From IMG/VR virus record IMGVR_UViG_3300044712_000810, positions 248,001 to 312,000 of that record: a stretch of DNA of 64,000 nucleotides; one strand, written 5' to 3'. Below are positions 14,908 to 53,752 of the stretch, piece after piece. The notes under the pieces were generated by a model. It did no database searches and was not told where the DNA came from. It saw only the letters and a list, made by a program, of their open reading frames with translations. Each line of letters begins with the position of its first letter. Within the stretch, counting starts at the first letter, position 1. Made by a program: the position numbers and the translations under genes.

Positions 14908-15528
14908 ATGGCCGAAGTGTTGAACCTGACCAAAGGCGAAAACATCTCTCTCGACAAAACCGCTGACCAGCTGACCAACATCTTCGTCGGTCTGGGCTGG
15001 AACCCGCAGAAGGGTGCCGGCGCTGATTTCGACCTGGACGCCACGGTCTTGTGTCTCACCAAGGAAGGCAAGGCCCGCAACGCGGCTGACATGTGCTACT
15101 TCGGCAAACTGAGCCTGTACGACGGCGTCATCAAGCACTCCCCCGACGATCTCACCGGAGGCTCGTCCGACGACGGCGACGACGAGATCATCACCTTCGA
15201 TCTGACCAAGATGCCGGCCGATGTGGCCGAAGCCATCGTTGCGGTCACCATCTACCAGGCCAAACAGCGCGGCCAGACCTTCGGACAGGTCGACAATGCC
15301 TACATTCGCGTTGGCACCGCCGACGTGAAGGGCAACTTCGAGCTGGAAAACGTGAAGGTCCTCGCCAAGTTCGACCTCACCGAGAACGCCTCCGGCGCCT
15401 CCGCCGTCATCATGGCCAAGCTGTACAAGACGGACGAGGGCGAGTGGAAGTTCAAGGTCATCGAGGAAGTCTTGAAGGACTTCGAGATCTCGCACCTGGC
15501 CGATCGCTACGGCGTCATGCACAAGTAA
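14908..15528 (+). CDS. terD: TerD-family stress protein
   Basis: NLTKGENISL, VGLGW, DFDLDA, HSPDDLTGG...GDDE, FGQVDNAYIRV, GEWKF; GC-rich codon usage. Confidence 0.92.
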   Translation: MAEVLNLTKGENISLDKTADQLTNIFVGLGWNPQKGAGADFDLDATVLCLTKEGKARNAADMCYFGKLSLYDGVIKHSPDDLTGGSSDDGDDEIITFDLTKMPADVAEAIVAVTIYQAKQRGQTFGQVDNAYIRVGTADVKGNFELENVKVLAKFDLTENASGASAVIMAKLYKTDEGEWKFKVIEEVLKDFEISHLADRYGVMHK

Positions 15529-15579
15529 CACCTGTGGGGTCGGCTCGAAAGAGTCGGCCCCTTTCTACTGGAGACACAA

Positions 15580-16515
15580 ATGCAACACTACTCGTTCGCG
15601 AACATTTTGATCTTTGGATTGTGCGTAGTTTTAGCACTTTTCATTGATCTCCACACTCACAAAAAGGACGAACCAATCAGCGTTAAAAGCGCTGCACTCT
15701 GGTCTGTCTTCTGGGTAGGTCTGGCGCTCCTGTTTTCCGTCTATATTGGCGCAACACACGGAGCCGATCAATCATCGCTATTCCTCGCCGGATATCTACT
15801 CGAGAAATCTCTCTCAGTGGACAATCTGTTCGTGTTCATGGCGGTGTTTGCATCATTCGGAATTCAAGACAAATATCAGCACCGAATTCTATACTTCGGT
15901 ATTATCGGTGCTCTCATCTTGCGATTTATCTTCATTGCCATCGGCAGCAGTTTCTTGCTCATTGCCGGAAAATGGGCATTAACAGCTTTTGCCTTATTCG
16001 TTTTGTGGTCCGCATGGAAAATGTGGAAATCCACGGATGATGACAATGAAGAAATAGTCGATTACACGGATCATTGGTCTGTAAAAATCGCAAAAAAGTT
16101 CCTTCCGGTATATCCTCACCGAGACGGCCATAACTTCTTTCACAAAGGAGCTTGTACGCCGTTCTTCCTGTGTCTGATAGTAATCGAAGTCGCAGACGTA
16201 ATGTTTGCATTCGACTCTGTTCCTGCCGTCATAGCAGTAACACAGGAACCATTCTTGGTATATACATCCAACATCTTCGCCATTCTCGGCTTGAGGTCAA
16301 TGTACTTCTTGCTGTCAGCGGCTAAAAGATATCTCTGTCACCTTGAAAAAGCAGTTATCATCGTGCTGGTCTTCATCGGCGTCAAGATGCTTCTTGATGT
16401 CTTTGGGCTTGTCCACATTACTCCGGTGGCAAGCTTGATCATCGTGGCAGCTGTACTCATCGGCGGCGTCATTTCGTCATTCTGTTACCCTGAAAAAGAA
16501 GAAATCACACAATAA
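15580..16515 (+). CDS. terC: TerC/Alx-family membrane protein
   Basis: GYLLEKSLSVDNLFVF, QHRILYFGIIGALILR, ADVMFAFDSVPAVIAVT, TSNIFAILGLRSMYF. Confidence 0.95.
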   Translation: MQHYSFANILIFGLCVVLALFIDLHTHKKDEPISVKSAALWSVFWVGLALLFSVYIGATHGADQSSLFLAGYLLEKSLSVDNLFVFMAVFASFGIQDKYQHRILYFGIIGALILRFIFIAIGSSFLLIAGKWALTAFALFVLWSAWKMWKSTDDDNEEIVDYTDHWSVKIAKKFLPVYPHRDGHNFFHKGACTPFFLCLIVIEVADVMFAFDSVPAVIAVTQEPFLVYTSNIFAILGLRSMYFLLSAAKRYLCHLEKAVIIVLVFIGVKMLLDVFGLVHITPVASLIIVAAVLIGGVISSFCYPEKEEITQ

Positions 16516-26512: not shown

Positions 26513-26683
26513 TCCAATCAACGACTAAATCCGTAGTATCGTCTAGGCGAGTAAACCTCGGTTTTGTTCGATTGGAAACTCCTAGGAGGGGAGGAGTAGT
26601 TCCTCTCCCGGCCAACTTCGTGTTGACAGCCGGTGATGATAAGCTCCTCCCACTTCTATGCCTTTAACTTACTGGAGACACTG

Positions 26684-27589
26684 ATGAAGAAATGCTTTTT
26701 TCACTCATCGGACATGGATGGATTCGCATCAGCTGCGATCGTCCAACTGAAATATCCTGATGTTAAACTCATCGGGATTAACCATGGTCAGCCTTTCAGG
26801 CACGACATGATACGCAAAACCGATGAAATCTATATGGTCGACTTCTGTCTTGAGCCTGCAGATGAAATGCGAAAACTCGCAAATAACTGTAAAACTCTTT
26901 ACTGGATCGATCATCATGTGTCTCAGATTGATAAGATGGTTGAGGCTAAAATCAAGCTTCCTGGTCTTCTCAGTTACGACGACGATGAAAAAGAAGCACC
27001 TGAAGGCACTATCGCTGGCAGTTTTGCCGCGTGTGAGCTTGTCTGGCAATATCTGTTTCCTGACAAAGAAATGCCTTATGGTATATATTTGTTGGGAAGA
27101 TATGACGTTTGGGATCTCGATGTAGATCCAAATGTCTTGAAATTTCAATACGGTTCTCGTTTACAATCTGTCTTTGTTGATAAAGATAGCGATTTCTGGA
27201 AGCGTTTATTCGCTTCTGATAAAGAATTCATGGATCACATCATCGCAGAAGGTGATGTAATCTTGAGATATGAACGGCAAATTAATGCCAGACTCATGCG
27301 TGGGTATTCATATCTTAAAGATTTCCATGGATATCGTGCTCTTGTCATCAACAGACAATACTCGTCAACACTGACGTTTGAGTCTGTATGGGACGGAGAT
27401 AAACATGATATCATGGTTGCTTACTCAAGAAACCCTGACTGTTGGCTCGTCAGCCTCTACACCGCAAAAAAAGATATTGACGTATCTGCGATTGCGAGGT
27501 CATACGAACACAACGGTAAACGTGGCGGTGGTCATAAGAAAGCGGCGGGATTCCAAACTCAAGATATCTCGCCCTTGTTACCTGCCTGA
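26684..27589 (+). CDS. DHH/DHHA1 phosphoesterase (NrnA-like)
   Basis: HSSDMDG, MVDF, WIDHH, GRYDVW, GGGHKKAAGF. Confidence 0.88.
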   Translation: MKKCFFHSSDMDGFASAAIVQLKYPDVKLIGINHGQPFRHDMIRKTDEIYMVDFCLEPADEMRKLANNCKTLYWIDHHVSQIDKMVEAKIKLPGLLSYDDDEKEAPEGTIAGSFAACELVWQYLFPDKEMPYGIYLLGRYDVWDLDVDPNVLKFQYGSRLQSVFVDKDSDFWKRLFASDKEFMDHIIAEGDVILRYERQINARLMRGYSYLKDFHGYRALVINRQYSSTLTFESVWDGDKHDIMVAYSRNPDCWLVSLYTAKKDIDVSAIARSYEHNGKRGGGHKKAAGFQTQDISPLLPA

Positions 27590-27643
27590 ACTCTTCATAC
27601 GAAATTATGAAGATTAAATAAAAAAAATCAAAAAACAAAATAA

Positions 27644-27719
27644 GCCTGATTAGCTCCAATGGTAGAGCAATTGCCTTGTAAGCAATGGGTTGTTGGTTCA
27701 AATCCGACATCAGGCTCCA
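27644..27719 (+). tRNA. tRNA-Thr(TGT)
   Basis: Cloverleaf; ATTGC-CT TGT AA-GCAAT; CCA encoded. Confidence 0.9.
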
Positions 27720-27770
27720 TCTTTAACTGGGGGTCGAAAGACCCCCCAACTTTTATTATTGTGAGAATTT

Positions 27771-28193
27771 ATGGAACTTACACAAAAACAAAAAGGCAAT
27801 CTTTCAGAAATGAAAATTGCCGCAAAACTTATGGAATATGGATATACTGTTTGTTTTCCATATGGTGAAAATACAAGATTTGATTTAATTTTTGAATGCA
27901 ATTCAAAATTATATAAAGTTCAAGTTAAAACTGGAAGATACGACGAACAAACTGAAACTATTACAATTTCTTGTCGTAGTAATAAATGTTATATCAATCT
28001 TGAATCTACAGAAAATAGATCTCAAGATTATAAAAATGATGTTGATTATATAGGAACATATTGTCCACAATTAGATAAATGTTATATGATTCCTATTAAT
28101 GTTTGTGGAAAAGCTCAATTAAATTTACGAGTTGGAAATTCACAAAAAACAAATCAACATGGTACAAATTACGCATCACATTATCAAATTTGA
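27771..28193 (+). CDS. PD-(D/E)XK endonuclease (homing-like)
   Basis: KGNLSE.....LMEYGYTV.FPYGENTRFDLI...KVQVKT. Confidence 0.8.
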   Translation: MELTQKQKGNLSEMKIAAKLMEYGYTVCFPYGENTRFDLIFECNSKLYKVQVKTGRYDEQTETITISCRSNKCYINLESTENRSQDYKNDVDYIGTYCPQLDKCYMIPINVCGKAQLNLRVGNSQKTNQHGTNYASHYQI

Positions 28194-28207
28194 ATATTCT
28201 CAAATTT

Positions 28208-28218
28208 GATATGGAAAT
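28208..28218 (+). promoter_or_regulatory. Promoter-like motif variant upstream of the atypical tRNA cluster
   Basis: GATATGGAAAT. Confidence 0.45.
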
Positions 28219-28236
28219 ATTCAGTTGTACAAATTT

Positions 28237-28315
28237 CCGAGGCCTAGCTTAATATTAAAGCGCCTATCCGTTACACGATAGGAGAATACTGGTGAAATTC
28301 CGGTGCCGAGGGCCA
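28237..28315 (+). ncRNA. Atypical tRNA-like gene 1 (TTACA loop)
   Basis: Cloverleaf by hand; D-loop without GG; T-loop TGAAATT; arm CCTATC-CGTTACAC-GATAGG; ends GCCA. Confidence 0.6.
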
Positions 28316-28320
28316 TTTAT

Positions 28321-28397
28321 CGGGGACATAGCTTAAAAGAAAGCGCCTGTTCTTACAGACAGGAGAATCGTTGGTGTGATTCCGACATCCTCGACCA
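28321..28397 (+). ncRNA. Atypical tRNA-like gene 2 (Val TAC-like, one extra nt in anticodon arm)
   Basis: CGGGGAC/ATCCTCG acceptor; CCTGT-TCTTACAG-ACAGG; T-loop TGTGATT; ends ACCA. Confidence 0.65.
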
Positions 28398-28402
28398 TTT
28401 AT

Positions 28403-28477
28403 CTCGGTGTAGCTTAATTTAGAGCGCCTGTCCTTACAGACAGGAGATGATAGGCGAACCTCCTATCCCCGGGACCA
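28403..28477 (+). ncRNA. Atypical tRNA-like gene 3 (Val TAC-like, one extra nt in anticodon arm)
   Basis: CTCGGTG/CCCCGGG acceptor; CCTGTC-CTTACA-GACAGG; T-loop CGAACCT; ends ACCA. Confidence 0.65.
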
Positions 28478-28480
28478 ATT

Positions 28481-28560
28481 TTGCTGTGCATATCGAAAGA
28501 TGTGTAGTTTTGCCTCATAGTAGTCGCGAGCTATATAGAGAAATCTATCACAGCAGACCA
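28481..28560 (+). ncRNA. Atypical tRNA-like gene 4 with 8-bp acceptor stem
   Basis: TTGCTGTG/CACAGCAG-A-CCA; CATATC-GAAA-GATGTG; ATAGA-GAAA-TCTAT. Confidence 0.55.
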
Positions 28561-28563
28561 TTT

Positions 28564-28638
28564 GCGGTTGTAACTCAATTGGTAGAGTGGCAGCCTTCCA
28601 AGCTGTTAGTACGAGTTCGAGTCTCGTCTGCCGCTCCA
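28564..28638 (+). tRNA. tRNA-Gly(TCC)
   Basis: Cloverleaf; CT TCC AA loop; TCCA end. Confidence 0.9.
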
Positions 28639-28652
28639 ATTAACACAAACCT

Positions 28653-28686
28653 GGAGGCCCCGAAAGGGGTCTCCAACTTTATTTTT
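28653..28686 (+). terminator. Intrinsic terminator
   Basis: GGAGGCCCC-GAAA-GGGGTCTCC followed by a T tract. Confidence 0.75.
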
Positions 28687-28789
28687 GCATATCTTGTCGT
28701 CGCGGTCAAGAAACTCAGGCATGAGGAATTGGCGGGAGAACTGGTCACTTTCCCGCCAATTTAATCTGAAATTTAATATTCTAAAATTT

Positions 28790-28800
28790 GATATAGAAAT
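28790..28800 (+). promoter_or_regulatory. Recurrent promoter-like motif
   Basis: GATATAGAAAT, 20 nt before tRNA-Pro. Confidence 0.6.
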
Positions 28801-28819
28801 ATTGAGTTGCACAAACAAT

Positions 28820-28897
28820 CGGGGCGTAGCTCAGTTTGGCTAGAGCGCCTGCTTTGGGAGCAGGAAGTCGCGTGTTCGAATCATGTCGCCCCGACCA
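28820..28897 (+). tRNA. tRNA-Pro(TGG)
   Basis: Cloverleaf; TT TGG GA loop. Confidence 0.9.
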
Positions 28898-28911
28898 TTT
28901 TTCTTTATTGT

Positions 28912-28998
28912 GCTACTGTGGTGGAATTGGTAGACACCCGGGACTTAAAATCCCGTGACTGCGAGGTCGTGCCGGTTCGAGTCCGGCCAGTAGTACCA
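28912..28998 (+). tRNA. tRNA-Leu(TAA)
   Basis: Class II cloverleaf; CT TAA AA. Confidence 0.9.
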
Positions 28999-29010
28999 CA
29001 AAATTTCTGT

Positions 29011-29086
29011 GGGAGATTAGCTCAGCTGGGAGAGCGCCGCCCTTACAAGGCGGATGTCAGAGGTTCGATTCCTCTATCTCCTACCA
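29011..29086 (+). tRNA. tRNA-Val(TAC)
   Basis: Canonical cloverleaf; CT TAC AA. Confidence 0.92.
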
Positions 29087-29098
29087 CTTTTCCATTGT

Positions 29099-29181
29099 GC
29101 TCCAGTGGCGGAATTGGTAGACGCGCTAGCCTTAGGAGCTAGTGTTAATTCGTGGAGGTTCGAGTCCTCTCTGGAGTACCA
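29099..29181 (+). tRNA. tRNA-Leu(TAG)
   Basis: Class II; CT TAG GA. Confidence 0.9.
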
Positions 29182-29186
29182 CCTGT

Positions 29187-29264
29187 GCACCGGCCGTCTA
29201 ATTGGCTTTGGACATCTCCCTTTCAAGGAGAAGATAGCGGGTTCGAATCCCGTCCGGTGTACCA
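29187..29264 (+). tRNA. tRNA-Glu(TTC)
   Basis: CT TTC AA loop. Confidence 0.9.
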
Positions 29265-29279
29265 TTAAATTTCTTAAAT

Positions 29280-29354
29280 TGGGGAGTCGCCAAACGGTAA
29301 GGCACTGGGTTTTGGTCCCAGCATCTGAGGGTTCGAGTCCTTCCTCCCCAGCCA
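29280..29354 (+). tRNA. tRNA-Gln(TTG)
   Basis: TGGGGAG acceptor; TT TTG GT loop; G73. Confidence 0.9.
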
Positions 29355-29378
29355 AAAATTTCAAACAATCTCACACTA

Positions 29379-29389
29379 TACATAGAAAT
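29379..29389 (+). promoter_or_regulatory. Promoter-like motif variant
   Basis: TACATAGAAAT, 11 nt before tRNA-Lys. Confidence 0.5.
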
Positions 29390-29399
29390 AGTGTAATAT

Positions 29400-29475
29400 G
29401 CGCCGTTAGCTCAGCTGGTAGAGCAGTTGGCTTTTAACCAATTGGCCACAAGTTCAAATCTTGTACGGCGTACCA
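29400..29475 (+). tRNA. tRNA-Lys(TTT)
   Basis: CT TTT AA loop. Confidence 0.9.
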
Positions 29476-29481
29476 CCTTTC

Positions 29482-29520
29482 TTGAGGCACCGAAAGGTGC
29501 CTCAAATCTTTTATTTTTGC
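29482..29520 (+). terminator. Intrinsic terminator
   Basis: TTGAGGCACC-GAAA-GGTGCCTCAA followed by a T tract. Confidence 0.75.
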
Positions 29521-29526
29521 AATTTT

Positions 29527-29537
29527 CATATAGAAAT
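29527..29537 (+). promoter_or_regulatory. Recurrent promoter-like motif
   Basis: CATATAGAAAT, 15 nt before tRNA-Ala. Confidence 0.6.
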
Positions 29538-29551
29538 AATCAGTTAGAAGT

Positions 29552-29626
29552 GGGGGCTTAGCTCAGCGGGAGAGCACCTGCCTTGCACGCAGGGGGTCAA
29601 GAGTTCAAATCTCTTAGCCTCCACCA
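29552..29626 (+). tRNA. tRNA-Ala(TGC)
   Basis: GGGGGCT acceptor with G3:U70; CT TGC AC. Confidence 0.92.
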
Positions 29627-29639
29627 CTTTAAATTTAAT

Positions 29640-29715
29640 GGATACTTAGCTCAGTTGGTAGAGCACCTGCCTGAAGAGCAGGGTGTGCGCGGTTCGATTC
29701 CGTGAGTATCCACCA
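29640..29715 (+). tRNA. tRNA-Phe(GAA)
   Basis: CT GAA GA loop. Confidence 0.9.
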
Positions 29716-29721
29716 TTAAAT

Positions 29722-29945
29722 TTATTCCTCGAAAGAGGAATAAGATACTCCGTAGCGACTGTCGCAAGTCGACGACTGCTACAATGGGAGGTCTTTTAGG
29801 TTCCCTTTCAACCTCTTGAGGTTTTTGTCAAAATAACACTTTAGACTCCGAATCAAAAAGTGTTGCCGGACGCGAGGCGCCACCCTCACCCCTGATCTTT
29901 GACTACCTCTGCTGCTGGGAAAAAACTAACTGACCTCCCACCTTT
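29722..29945 (+). ncRNA. Candidate structured RNA
   Basis: No ORF; several hairpins inside a long-range TGGGAGGTC/GACCTCCCA stem. Confidence 0.4.
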
Positions 29946-40766: not shown

Positions 40767-40861
40767 GCTCCAGTAGCTCAATTGGCAGAGCATCCGGCTT
40801 ATACCCGGCTTAGCGGCTGATTACCGTAAGGTTGTGGGTTCGATTCCTACCTGGAGTACCA
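40767..40861 (+). tRNA. tRNA-Ile(TAT) with long variable arm
   Basis: CCGG-CT TAT AC-CCGG; V-arm CTTAGCGG/CCGTAAG; A73. Confidence 0.8.
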
Positions 40862-42746: not shown

Positions 42747-42821
42747 CTCTGTATAGCTCAGTGGCAGAGCTGGGAACTCTAAATTCCCCGGTCGCGAGTT
42801 CGAGTCTCGCTACAGAGGCCA
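42747..42821 (+). tRNA. Amber suppressor tRNA (anticodon CTA)
   Basis: CTCTGTA/TACAGAG, G73, CCA; GGGAA-CT CTA AA-TTCCC; canonical D-loop GG and TTCG. Confidence 0.88.
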
Positions 42822-43675: not shown

Positions 43676-45097
43676 ATGTTATGTCAAGACAACATTTTGG
43701 TTAATACTGATTCGTATAAATCTTCTCACTTCCTCCAATACCCTCCTGGTACTGAGGTGGTGAGCAGTTATATCGAGTCACGTAACGCTGGCAGATGGCC
43801 TCGCACCATCTTTTTCGGTCTTCAGATGTTCATCAAAGAATATCTGCTCAGACCATTTACTCTTGCGGATATTGAATTCGCCAAAGATTTCTGGGAAATG
43901 CATGGCGAACCTTTCAATTTCGATGGTGCAAAATACATCTATGATCAATATGGCGGATACCTTCCGGTCACCATTCAGGCGGTCAAGGAAGGAACAAATA
44001 TTGAAACCAGTAACGTCCTTGTGCAACTGAGAAACAATGGTGGTGAAAAAACCTCATGGATTACCAACTTCCTTGAAACTTCATTGCTTCGTGGTGTTTG
44101 GTATCCAACTTCAATTGCAACTCTCAGTTTCATGTGTAAGAAGATCATTTACAATGCTCTTCAACTCACAGCTGACAATCCTGATGCTGAAATTCTGTTT
44201 AAACTTCATGATTTCGGTTTCCGTGGAGTCTCTTCGTGGGAATCTGCCGCTATCGGCGGTTGTGCCCACTTGGTGAACTTCATGGGTTCTGATACAGTAG
44301 CAGGCGTTTTGGCAGCACGCAATTACTACAATGAAAAAATGGCTGGATTTAGCATTCCTGCATCTGAGCACAGCACGATTACATCGTGGGGTCCAGGTAT
44401 GGAAGCAGAAGCATTCTTGAACATGATCAATCGTTTCGGAGGCAAAGGCAAGCTTTACGCTTGTGTGTCCGATTCGTATGATATTTGGAATGCCGTCGAA
44501 AACATCTGGCCATCTCTGAAAGACGCAATCATCGAGAAGGGCGGAACTCTTGTAGTTCGTCCCGATAGTGGAAATCCTGTAGCAGTTGTTGCAGGTGTCA
44601 TTGAAAGACTTATGTCGAAGTTTGGATGGACTGAAAACTCGAAAGGTTATCGTGTCCTTCCTGAATACATTCGCGTTATTCAAGGCGATGGAATCGATGA
44701 AGAATCAATTCGTGATATCTTACAAGAATTGCAATTCAGAAAGATCAGTGCATCAAACGTTGCTTTTGGCATGGGTGGTGCGCTTCTTCAACATCTGAAT
44801 CGTGATACCCTTAGATTTGCAATGAAATGCAATAGCATTAAGCGCAACGGTTCTTGGCAGGACGTAAGCAAAAATCCAGTAACGGATTCCGGAAAGGTAT
44901 CTAAGGCAGGTCGTCTTGCCCTTATAAAAATCGATCCTGAAAAGGAAGGTCGCAGAGGCGAACCATACTTCAAGACCATCCGTGAGGATGAACTTGGAGA
45001 TCGTGAAAATTGTCTCGAGACAGTTTTTGAAAATGGTGAACTGATGCGTGAACAGTCATTCTCTGAAATTCGTGAACTCGCAGCATCGAGTTTGTAA
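43676..45097 (+). CDS. nadV: Nicotinamide phosphoribosyltransferase (Nampt)
   Basis: TDSYKSSH..QYP, KLHDFGFRG, PASEHS, VSDSYD, VRPDSG, QGDG. Confidence 0.95.
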   Translation: MLCQDNILVNTDSYKSSHFLQYPPGTEVVSSYIESRNAGRWPRTIFFGLQMFIKEYLLRPFTLADIEFAKDFWEMHGEPFNFDGAKYIYDQYGGYLPVTIQAVKEGTNIETSNVLVQLRNNGGEKTSWITNFLETSLLRGVWYPTSIATLSFMCKKIIYNALQLTADNPDAEILFKLHDFGFRGVSSWESAAIGGCAHLVNFMGSDTVAGVLAARNYYNEKMAGFSIPASEHSTITSWGPGMEAEAFLNMINRFGGKGKLYACVSDSYDIWNAVENIWPSLKDAIIEKGGTLVVRPDSGNPVAVVAGVIERLMSKFGWTENSKGYRVLPEYIRVIQGDGIDEESIRDILQELQFRKISASNVAFGMGGALLQHLNRDTLRFAMKCNSIKRNGSWQDVSKNPVTDSGKVSKAGRLALIKIDPEKEGRRGEPYFKTIREDELGDRENCLETVFENGELMREQSFSEIRELAASSL

Positions 45098-45098
45098 A

Positions 45099-45626
45099 AT
45101 GACAACTATACCAAGAGCTGGTGTATATATTGGACGTTTCTGTCCATTGCACCATGGACACATGAAAATAATCGATGAAATGATTAAACATCATGGAATT
45201 GATAAGTGTCTGATTCTTATCGGCAGTTGCAATGCCGACATATCATTCAGAGTATTATTCAAACATAGTGATAGACGTCGTTGGATAAAAAGAATATATC
45301 CAGATCTTAAACAATTAGGATTGCCCGATTATCCCAACGATGATACAGCATGGCTTACACAAGTAGAAGATATTGTATCTCTTGTATTTGGCAAAGAATG
45401 TGAACCTACGTTCTATGGCGGATGTCAAGAAGATATTGAAATCTTTTATGATGCAGGTCATCATGTAAAAATTATTGATAGAATGGAATATCCGGTAAGC
45501 GCAACAAATGTTAGACAATTACTATTAATGAATGAAGATATTAATACGTTAGTCGACACTCGTATTTCGAGTGAAGTTATCGATGTATTTCGAAAACGTA
45601 TGAAAGAACTTGACAAACTACGTTAA
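45099..45626 (+). CDS. NMN adenylyltransferase (Nmnat, NadM/NadR-type)
   Basis: YIGRFCPLHHGH (HxGH), LIGS, VSATNVR. Confidence 0.85.
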   Translation: MTTIPRAGVYIGRFCPLHHGHMKIIDEMIKHHGIDKCLILIGSCNADISFRVLFKHSDRRRWIKRIYPDLKQLGLPDYPNDDTAWLTQVEDIVSLVFGKECEPTFYGGCQEDIEIFYDAGHHVKIIDRMEYPVSATNVRQLLLMNEDINTLVDTRISSEVIDVFRKRMKELDKLR

Positions 45627-53354: not shown

Positions 53355-53565
53355 GATATAGAAATATTAATGAAAGCTCCGGAGAGGCATCGCCCCACCC
53401 CACGCTGGCCCGGACATGATCTGACGCCATAGCGTAGCTTCGCCACAGCGTAACCCGATAGGCAGATTTGCACACGGGCATCGGCCATCGACGCTAACTG
53501 GCGATCTGGCACATCGCCTCTCCACTCGCTTGAGGGGACCTTCGGGTCCCCTTTCTACTTTTTTT
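53355..53565 (+). ncRNA. Candidate sRNA unit A (promoter, rod-like GC-rich RNA, terminator)
   Basis: GATATAGAAAT; GGAGAGGC/GCCTCTCC and ATCGCC/GGCGAT stems; AGGGGACC-TTCG-GGTCCCCT plus T tract. Confidence 0.5.
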
Positions 53566-53579
53566 GTTTTCTGTATTTT

Positions 53580-53740
53580 GATATAGAAATAGTAAAGTAC
53601 GCATAATGGAAACGCCGGGATGCCTCCTTGGCTCTTGTGGGATTGGCTCACAAGGGTAATAAGGTCCGGTTGATCCATGCGTGGTTGGCGGGGTAGAGTC
53701 TGTATAGATTCCCCCGCTAACCGATATTTATTTTTTTAAT
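53580..53740 (+). ncRNA. Candidate sRNA unit B
   Basis: GATATAGAAAT; nested stems ACGCA/TGCGT, TGGA/TCCA, CCGG/CCGG, CTCTTGTG/CACAAGGG; terminator GGTTGGCGGGG/CCCCGCTAACC. Confidence 0.45.
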
Positions 53741-53752
53741 ATTTACTTGTTT

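Follow-up and report, generated by a model that had tools for sequence, protein, structure and literature searches.

The closest functional parallel in the literature to the genes described here appears, by analogy, to be the staphylococcal non-proteogenic transfer RNA (tRNA) for glycine (NP1-NP3; S. epidermidis Ia/Ib), which carries TGC or TGT in place of TTC in its T-loop, lacks G19, binds EF-Tu poorly and does not bind the ribosome (PMC7826273). The genes in question, called the trio below, are three tandem tRNA-like genes at 28237-28477 of a window of 64,000 nucleotides (nt), the whole stretch of DNA that was analyzed, which belongs to the 314,837-bp contig of an uncultivated phage (IMGVR_UViG_3300044712_000810; 64 of 315 kb read). 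Judged from their sequence, they are a real and well-formed set of non-canonical tRNA-like genes, with the appearance of tRNA mimics more than of ordinary decoding tRNAs. The three genes are:

28237..28315, + strand: g1, tRNA-like gene; cloverleaf read from the sequence and minimum-free-energy fold; ends in G73-CCA
28321..28397, + strand: g2, tRNA-like gene; cloverleaf read from the sequence and minimum-free-energy fold; ends in A73-CCA
28403..28477, + strand: g3, tRNA-like gene; cloverleaf read from the sequence and minimum-free-energy fold; ends in A73-CCA

The staphylococcal species are extra copies beside normal isoacceptors and are excluded from translation. The trio resembles them in having no GG in the D-loop and in the T-loops of g2 (TGT) and g1 (TGA), and g3 (CGA) has the exact T-stem, A49-U65/U50-A64/A51-U63, which in the staphylococcal tRNA-Gly binds EF-Tu weakly (PMC7826273). 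The T-stem likeness is weak, since the canonical tRNA-Val of this phage also carries two of the three pairs, A49-U65 and A51-U63. The staphylococcal tRNAs differ in being cellular and in having a 7-nt UCC loop, GlyRS identity and the partners FmhB, FemA and FemB, whereas the phage genes have an enlarged loop with a Val-type anticodon.

A second comparison, already drawn in the initial annotation of this locus and accurate according to PMC7609411, as is its reference to 8-nt anticodon loops, is with tRNA-Pyl, which is without G18G19 and T-Psi-C and has an anticodon stem of 6 base pairs (bp). It differs from the trio in its CUA anticodon, 3-nt variable loop, 0-1-nt connector between acceptor and D-stem, G1:C72 with G73, and 7-nt anticodon loop; with a UAC core, C1-G72, G73 in g1 only, a variable loop of 5-6 nt and a connector of 2-3 nt, the trio was not assigned to this family. 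Yeast mitochondrial tRNA-Thr has a natural 8-nt anticodon loop and still reads triplets (PMC7609411). In loop size g2 and g3 are like this tRNA-Thr(UAG), their extra base lying 5′ of the anticodon; however, tRNA-Thr(UAG) replaces the normal codon reader and has a dedicated synthetase, whereas the phage keeps a tRNA-Val(UAC) and the elbow of the trio is lost. Anticodon loops of at least 8 nt are associated with +1 frameshifting in mutants and some mitochondria, although non-triplet reading is not implied by them (PMC5009743). The known +1 frameshift and quadruplet tRNAs are mutants, engineered or rare mitochondrial cases tied to shift sites, and none of these sites was seen in the window.

Two sets of phage RNAs also bear comparison. 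RNA C and RNA D of phage T4 are small stable RNAs of unknown role from a phage tRNA region (PMC3014915); they have no sequence relation to the trio and are not described in that paper as cloverleaves with anticodon arms. A blastn search with the trio region found no match in 50,697 phage records, and membership in this group was rejected. Phage tRNAs that counteract tRNA-cleaving defences are described in PMC10264068, PMC11464382 and PMC11555353, the examples being T5 tRNA-Lys against PARIS (PMC11464382), tRNA-Tyr against retron effectors (PMC11555353) and anticodon-loop variants of mycobacteriophages (PMC10264068). Like the trio, these are phage-encoded tRNA genes with anticodon-loop differences; unlike it, they are in other respects canonical, functional decoders that replace the cleaved host tRNA, while the trio is non-canonical and redundant with a canonical copy.

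Structure and detection of the three genes

The trio reads, as had been claimed for it, as three related cloverleaves with encoded CCA, and in each copy the cloverleaf is also the minimum-free-energy fold. The genes are separated by 5-nt TTTAT spacers, and TRF reports a tandem array with an 81-nt period over them. Each copy has an acceptor stem of 7 bp, a D-stem of 4 bp, an anticodon stem of 5 bp and a T-stem of 5 bp closed by G53-C61; the variable loops are of 5-6 nt and the connector from acceptor to D-stem is of 2-3 nt, being 3 nt in g1 and g2 where 2 is usual. The acceptor stems all open with C1-G72 and are followed by the discriminators G (g1), A (g2) and A (g3), but they are unlike the Val acceptor and every copy has a defect. 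The stem of g1 contains the tandem mismatch G3.A70/A4.G69 that had been pointed out previously, that of g2 has C1-G72, G2-C71, G3.U70, G4-C69, G5-C68 and C7.A66, and that of g3 includes C1-G72, U2.G71 and U6.C67.

Both partners of the elbow contact are absent. The D-loops AATATTA (g1), AAAAGA (g2) and AATTTA (g3) are A/U-rich and without GG, and none of the T-loops TGAAATT (g1), TGTGATT (g2) and CGAACCT (g3) has TTC; in g3 the loop is carried by a T-stem with A49-U65, U50-A64 and A51-U63. The earlier statement that G18G19 and TTC are missing therefore stands, the elbow signature being present in 0/3 copies of the trio and in 27/27 canonical tRNAs of the window.

Direct reading also bears out the unusual anticodon arms, which measure 20 nt in g1 and 18 nt in g2 and g3, an enlargement of 1-3 nt, with UUACA in each loop. 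In g1 the arm has 6 bp and the loop CGUUACAC; the g2 loop UCUUACAG is of 8 nt, or 6 nt with a U.G pair closed, and the g3 loop CCUUACAG is of 8 nt, or 6 nt with a C-G pair closed. The three loops are thus of 10, 8 and 8 nt on a 5-bp stem or of 8, 6 and 6 nt if a sixth pair (C-G, U.G and C-G, model probabilities 0.78, 0.71 and 0.98 in g1, g2 and g3) is formed. The loops of g2 and g3 equal the canonical Val loop with one additional base on the 5′ side, giving a 3+3+2 layout, and that of g1 is longer by two bases on the 5′ side and by one on the 3′ side; the U33-UAC-A37 core is present throughout.

The gene with which the trio is compared is:

29011..29086, + strand: canonical tRNA-Val(UAC); called by ARAGORN, Rfam 69.3 bits; ~700 nt downstream of the trio

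It is one of 27 tRNA genes called by ARAGORN in the window, which cover all amino acids but Asn and include a CUA suppressor type, and in 27/27 of these canonical tRNAs the CCA is encoded, the D-loop has GG and the T-loop has TTC. The presence of a normal tRNA-Val(TAC) at 29011 is thereby confirmed, and the trio is not needed as a Val(UAC) decoder. The prediction that tRNA finders would miss the trio also came true: ARAGORN makes no call within 28237-28477, and with the Rfam tRNA model (RF00005) the scores are 24.6 (g1), 26.5 (g2) and 18.4 bits (g3), all below the gathering score of 29. Because standard tRNA finders miss them, RNAs of this kind are undercounted in censuses of phage tRNAs.

Other assignments were considered. 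A canonical elongator tRNA fits the stems and CCA, but not the Rfam gathering score, the ARAGORN call, the elbow or a 7-nt loop. Protein coding on either strand was discarded, the ORFs (open reading frames) there being short and overlapping tRNAs; no integrase was seen near the trio that would point to an integration site, and neither YrlA nor any other Rfam family matches it.

Selection on the cloverleaf

The three copies were aligned to a covariance model, and their pairing was compared with that obtained with slid partners and with 500 shuffles. Standard pairs are found in 59/63 stem cells (93.7%), as against 38-48% with the partners slid, and 8/21 pairs are changed on both sides, which is reached by 0/500 shuffles. 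The T-stem is paired in 15/15 cells. Divergence is uneven: identity among the copies amounts to 84-95% in the D and anticodon stems and to 45-55% in the acceptor and T arms, and a 38-nt stretch is 87% identical between g2 and g3. While both elbow partners are gone in all copies, U8, A14, G53-C61 and CCA are retained in all, and U54 and A58 in g1 and g2.

The paired cells, the both-sided changes and the uneven divergence together point to a constraint that acts on the cloverleaf and, in the anticodon half, on the sequence as well, and the trio appears to be shaped by selection for the cloverleaf and not by decay. This agrees with the argument made at the outset against simple decay, since compensatory changes keep all four stems, and elbow loss and the enlarged arm are common to the copies. 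Very probably, the trio represents three old tandem duplicates of a gene derived from tRNA-Val(UAC) in a 315-kb jumbo phage, forming one unit with a fourth RNA and a tRNA-Gly behind a promoter-like motif. The T-stem of g2 agrees with that of tRNA-Thr(UGU) at 10/10 positions, and the g1 T-stem agrees with that of tRNA-Met at 9/10; an origin of the top halves from these tRNAs was set aside, as the matches are within chance among 27 candidates.

Proposed transcription unit

The surroundings of the trio contain, on the + strand, the elements below, which are followed by examples of core motif sites from across the window:

28193..28221, + strand: promoter-like motif, 29-nt form; ends 16 nt before g1, recurs in the window
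28205-28219, + strand: promoter-like 15-nt core; ends 18 nt before g1
28480..28560, + strand: fourth cloverleaf-like small RNA; 9-bp closing stem, three hairpins, two of them with GAAA loops; CCA end
28564..28638, + strand: canonical tRNA-Gly(UCC), last gene of the apparent unit; called by ARAGORN, Rfam 65.7 bits
28652..28690, + strand: terminator-like hairpin of 10 bp with GAAA loop, then a T-run
14822, 17030, 28205, 28787, 29524, 36684, 43138, 53352, 53577, 53750, 57426: examples of core motif sites

The trio, the fourth RNA, tRNA-Gly and the terminator appear to be one transcription unit; RNase P and 3′ trimming presumably release the trio RNAs from it, as with the neighbouring tRNAs. The promoter-like motif proposed in the initial annotation holds up well. 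Its 15-nt core, TTT(G/C)ATATAGAAATA, has 18 sites in the window, compared with an expectation of 1.65. Of these sites, 17 lie on the + strand and most are intergenic, and several copies stand 14-23 nt before tRNA genes such as those for Pro, Ala and Cys. The 29-nt form is found at 28193, 28775 (before tRNA-Pro) and 53340, where 0 would be expected. The core is probably a promoter of the phage's own RNA polymerase. A scan of IMG/VR with the motif gave 24 other loci, which are taken as chance matches because none of them has a tRNA-like match.

The fourth RNA ends in CCA 3 nt before tRNA-Gly and is not tRNA-like in detail. Its fold z-score is −3.05, 1/200 shuffles folding equally well, and it has no match in Rfam or with the model R1 described below.

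The phage was also followed in sequencing runs. A rhizosphere metagenome DNA run contains 95% of the words sampled from window positions 27600-29800. One contig of 151 nt from a wastewater metatranscriptome run (X2) is identical to 28525-28675, a stretch that covers tRNA-Gly together with the end of the fourth RNA and the stem of the terminator. The contig may come from precursor RNA or from DNA, and the phage or a near-identical relative is therefore present in wastewater too. Another wastewater RNA run contains 2/28 sampled words.

Related tRNAs in other phages

Orthologs were sought by DNA-pattern scans of IMG/VR, JGI metagenome contigs and GTDB genomes, with patterns aimed at the trio or its relatives and, for IMG/VR, a broader Val-type pattern, and by megablast and distant blastn in GenBank phages; distant blastn of 28230-28563 against the 50,697 phage records gave no match. 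Elbow-less tRNA-Val(UAC) genes do occur in the tRNA arrays of uncultivated phages:

L020:1651-1724 (= L002:10967-11040, L035:8943-9016): elbow-less tRNA-Val(UAC)
L018:397-470, − strand: elbow-less tRNA-Val(UAC)
L019:3779-3852: elbow-less tRNA-Val(UAC)

This group (L002/L020/L035, L018 and L019/L027) is single-copy, is not called by ARAGORN, and has the T-loops GGCAGTA, AGAGTTA and AGCGTTA, no GG and an encoded CCA. With the trio it shares the D arm TAGCTTAA...AAGCGCC, the absence of GG and TTC, the encoded CCA and the ARAGORN miss; it differs in its 7-nt loop UUUACAC, its Val-type acceptor (G1.U72, A73) and its single copy. Pairing of the stems is complete (100%), and in five pairs both sides have changed. 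In the 26-tRNA array of L020 the elbow-less gene is the sole Val(UAC), and these tRNAs apparently replace the canonical Val(UAC) in their arrays. A model of the family (R1) gives its own members 96-101 bits, g1 31.1, g2 41.1, g3 31.7 and the canonical Val 51.7 bits; no other cryptic tRNA-like gene of the window came to light with it. At least two distinct kinds of elbow loss are thus seen in phage tRNA-Val(UAC), one in the trio and one in the single-copy genes of the other phages, and such loss is compatible with service as the working decoder.

Enlarged loops recur elsewhere as well. Two megaphage contigs of 385 and 476 kb, L063 (2376-2448) and L068 (1212-1284), have in common a tRNA with an 8-nt anticodon loop, for which ARAGORN prints '???' and the anticodon acat; the layout is 3+3+2 around CAU, and the stems differ between the two contigs. 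In 7/8 tRNAs printed from the arrays of these contigs the T-loop is AUCGUUA or AUCGUAA and not UUCGAAU. A further tRNA-Val(UAC), at L028:5710-5788 (− strand; = L036, a Candidatus Campbellbacteria metagenome-assembled genome), has a canonical elbow, a 6-bp anticodon stem and a 7-nt loop. Taken together, these cases indicate that in large uncultivated phages selection maintains cloverleaf RNAs that lack the universal elbow contacts and that 8-nt anticodon loops recur there.

Proposed role of the trio

Tentatively, we infer that the three RNAs may be non-decoding mimics of tRNA-Val(UAC) that act as decoys of its anticodon arm, and we rank this idea first among the readings considered. The RNAs would be made and matured like tRNAs without decoding. 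The acceptor/T minihelix with CCA would be the generic part that gives processing and stability, while the conserved anticodon arm, supplied from three gene copies, would serve as bait for a factor recognizing the anticodon arm of tRNA-Val(UAC), most plausibly a defence nuclease of the host that cleaves tRNA. Their remodelled elbow, together with the non-standard loop and the imperfectly paired acceptor stems, would bar the trio RNAs from translation, which canonical tRNA-Val would serve.

Several observations are consistent with this proposal. Identity is high in the anticodon half and low in the top half, which places the sequence constraint in the anticodon half. A loop that varies in size and keeps UUACA, with a possible sixth pair, is more in keeping with a motif that is recognized than with a loop made for precise decoding. 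The codon GUA is frequent (19.9 per 1000; 299 uses in 63 window ORFs), so an aberrant GUA reader would be costly. Staphylococcal tRNAs with TGY for TTC and no G19 are excluded from translation, which we count for non-decoding (PMC7826273). The proposal also fits the redundancy with canonical Val(UAC), the imperfect acceptors, the near-complete tRNA set of the phage and the counter-defence by phage tRNAs that has been published (PMC10264068, PMC11464382, PMC11555353). The putative promoter and terminator of the unit are likewise counted in its favour, and by analogy the NAD-salvage genes of counter-defence type and the RNA-repair neighbours of DHH homologs, both described below, may be counted as context. 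A related idea, that the trio might mimic an operator, was followed by searching for copies of the anticodon hairpin elsewhere in the window, and none was found. If the decoys are true, they would be, as far as we know, the first RNA-based countermeasure against tRNA-directed immunity.

A number of points weigh against the decoy proposal. Within the reach of the patterns and of blastn, no orthologs of the trio were found in IMG/VR, JGI metagenome contigs, GTDB or GenBank phages, the source contig alone matching, and the conservation described above is that among three paralogous copies of a single genome. The high identity of the D/anticodon half could be due to gene conversion, without selection on sequence. 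The sixth anticodon pair is not established, because the thermodynamic model over-pairs a normal tRNA-Pro loop too. Elbow-less genes appear to be the sole Val(UAC) in other arrays, so elbow loss alone need not mean loss of decoding. A nuclease with specificity for tRNA-Val(UAC) is not known to us, nor are we aware of any report of an RNA that acts as a decoy for anticodon nucleases, and a nuclease might need the elbow that the trio is without. The traces in RNA libraries consist of the X2 contig, which lies outside the trio, and the 2/28 words in the other run.

Alternative readings

The main rival, which we consider unlikely, is that the three RNAs are specialized decoders, charged and ribosomal, which read GUA/GUN triplets despite the 8-nt loop and whose odd loop and elbow resist a host anticodon nuclease. 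It accounts for the retention of U33-UAC-A37, 7-bp acceptor stems, discriminators and CCA, and the extra nucleotide 5′ of U33 in a 3+3+2 layout recurs, with differing stems, in the CAU tRNA of L063 and L068. The elbow-less and fully compensated Val(UAC) tRNAs that stand for canonical Val(UAC) in other phage arrays speak for it too, as does the precedent of tRNA-Pyl, which works without G18G19 and T-Psi-C, and of yeast mitochondrial tRNA-Thr, which reads CUN with an 8-nt loop (PMC7609411); phage tRNAs, moreover, are reported to escape nucleases by anticodon-loop changes (PMC10264068). Decoding is, however, difficult to reconcile with a canonical Val(UAC) in the same array, with a loop size in g1 that differs from that of g2 and g3, and with acceptors that are unlike Val and each defective, g1 having G73. 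ValRS depends on the geometry of A35 and C36, which is a further difficulty for enlarged loops. If decoding were nevertheless true, the trio would be a natural case of elbow-less, expanded-loop tRNAs on bacterial ribosomes, of relevance to genetic-code engineering.

It is improbable that the three genes are relics, either duplicated tRNA genes nearing loss or neutral passengers of a mobile cassette, with stems inherited and not selected. The mismatch in each acceptor stem and the gene of a PD-(D/E)XK endonuclease directly upstream lend themselves to this explanation, and the Rfam and ARAGORN misses and the absence of orthologs are compatible with it without favouring it. Decay, on the other hand, does not readily produce 8/21 pairs changed on both sides, 94% of cells paired and a T-stem paired in 15/15 cells, nor the loss of both elbow partners in all copies with G53-C61, U8, A14 and CCA retained (and U54/A58 in g1 and g2). 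The g2 T-loop differs from that of tRNA-Thr(UGU) at 4/7 positions despite the 10/10 identity of the T-stems, and the promoter-like motif and the terminator have stayed intact, as have the 5-nt spacers with their regular length.

Very unlikely, in our estimate, is a role in reprogramming decoding, whether as +1 frameshifters or readers of quadruplets, as suppressors of ochre codons or as tRNAs of switched identity, such as g2 delivering Ala at GUA. The enlarged anticodon loops belong to a type linked to frameshifting, but they imply no non-triplet reading (PMC5009743). The acceptor of g2 agrees at positions 2-5, and in A73, with that of the tRNA-Ala encoded by this phage, and AlaRS recognizes its tRNA mainly by G3:U70. 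Also present in the phage are an amber-type tRNA(CUA) and a UAU tRNA with a class II body resembling Leu, and together with these the trio could conceivably form a decoding-reprogramming kit, with 8-nt loops and non-Val identities, that changes the meaning or frame of GUA codons in selected messages, although we give this version a very slim chance as well. The frameshift or quadruplet decoding put forward in the initial annotation found no footing, as no ORF pair on the + strand of the window needs a +1 shift, every downstream ORF having its own ATG near the upstream stop, and +1 overlaps contain no GTA. Its other suggestion, reading of ochre codons through UUA, is unlikely: that register has C33 and C37 and so is without U33 and a purine at 37, and ochre suppression would be harmful because TAA ends 45/63 window ORFs. 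Val-to-Ala replacement or frameshifting at GUA would similarly damage phage proteins, given the 299 uses of this codon. As a whole, the interpretation first offered for the locus is partly supported; its decoy idea is the one ranked first here, and its idea of a special synthetase may also hold.

Least probable of all is that the RNAs are non-ribosomal aminoacyl donors, charged, poor in EF-Tu binding and feeding a tRNA-dependent transferase of phage or host, as the T-loops TGA (g1) and TGT (g2), the lack of G18G19 and the g3 T-stem would suggest by likeness to non-proteogenic tRNA-Gly (PMC7826273), since the 40 larger ORFs of the window (Pfam; 64 of 315 kb) include no Fem-type, L/F- or other tRNA-dependent transferase and no aminoacyl-tRNA synthetase, the anticodon loop that non-proteogenic tRNAs present to their synthetase is a normal one where the trio loops are enlarged, and the T-stem argument is weakened by the A49-U65 and A51-U63 of canonical Val.

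Genome context and further observations

The phage contig has a G+C content of ~33%, and neither megablast nor distant blastn found close relatives of the phage among the 50,697 GenBank records. According to a Pfam scan, its genes in the window include pieces of a split multisubunit RNA polymerase, ribonucleotide reductase, DNA ligase and NAD-salvage enzymes. Neighbours of the tRNA region and other genes mentioned here are:

27771..28193, + strand: PD-(D/E)XK endonuclease ORF, upstream neighbour of the trio; Pfam PF11645, E = 5.5e-35
26633-27589, + strand: DHH-family protein ORF adjoining the tRNA region
43676-45626, + strand: NAMPT and a cytidylyltransferase-like protein (NAD salvage)
14908-16515, + strand: TerD and TerC homologs

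The PD-(D/E)XK ORF is probably a homing-type nuclease in the tRNA region. The DHH protein matches only itself in IMG/VR; homologs of ~40% identity in the other jumbo-phage contigs L042, L043 and L044 have no tRNA genes near them. The homologs adjoin a CCA-adding enzyme, RlaP, RtcB or a 2′-5′ RNA ligase, and their neighbourhoods look like RNA-repair clusters in other jumbo phages. With NAMPT, the cytidylyltransferase-like protein, TerD and TerC, accessory genes are abundant in this part of the genome, and NAD salvage is a known theme of counter-defence.

The UAU tRNA is a class II tRNA of 95 nt at 40767-40861 (+ strand) with a variable arm of ~21 nt, called Ile(tat) by ARAGORN; in its acceptor stem and A73 it does not differ from tRNA-Leu(tag) at 29099. 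LeuRS takes no account of the anticodon, and this UAU tRNA on a Leu-like body may therefore read AUA as Leu. The amber-suppressor-type tRNA(CUA) lies at 42747-42821 (+ strand) and has C1-G72 and G73. TAG terminates 9/63 window ORFs, with read-through extensions that are mostly short; being kept as a stop in this way, TAG gives no sign of recoding in the window.

Two candidate small RNAs, at 53369-53575 and 53596-53745 (+ strand), have no match in Rfam. Both are G+C-rich and ORF-free, with a promoter core in front and a hairpin followed by a T-run at the end, and their fold z-scores are −3.94 and −6.24, respectively.

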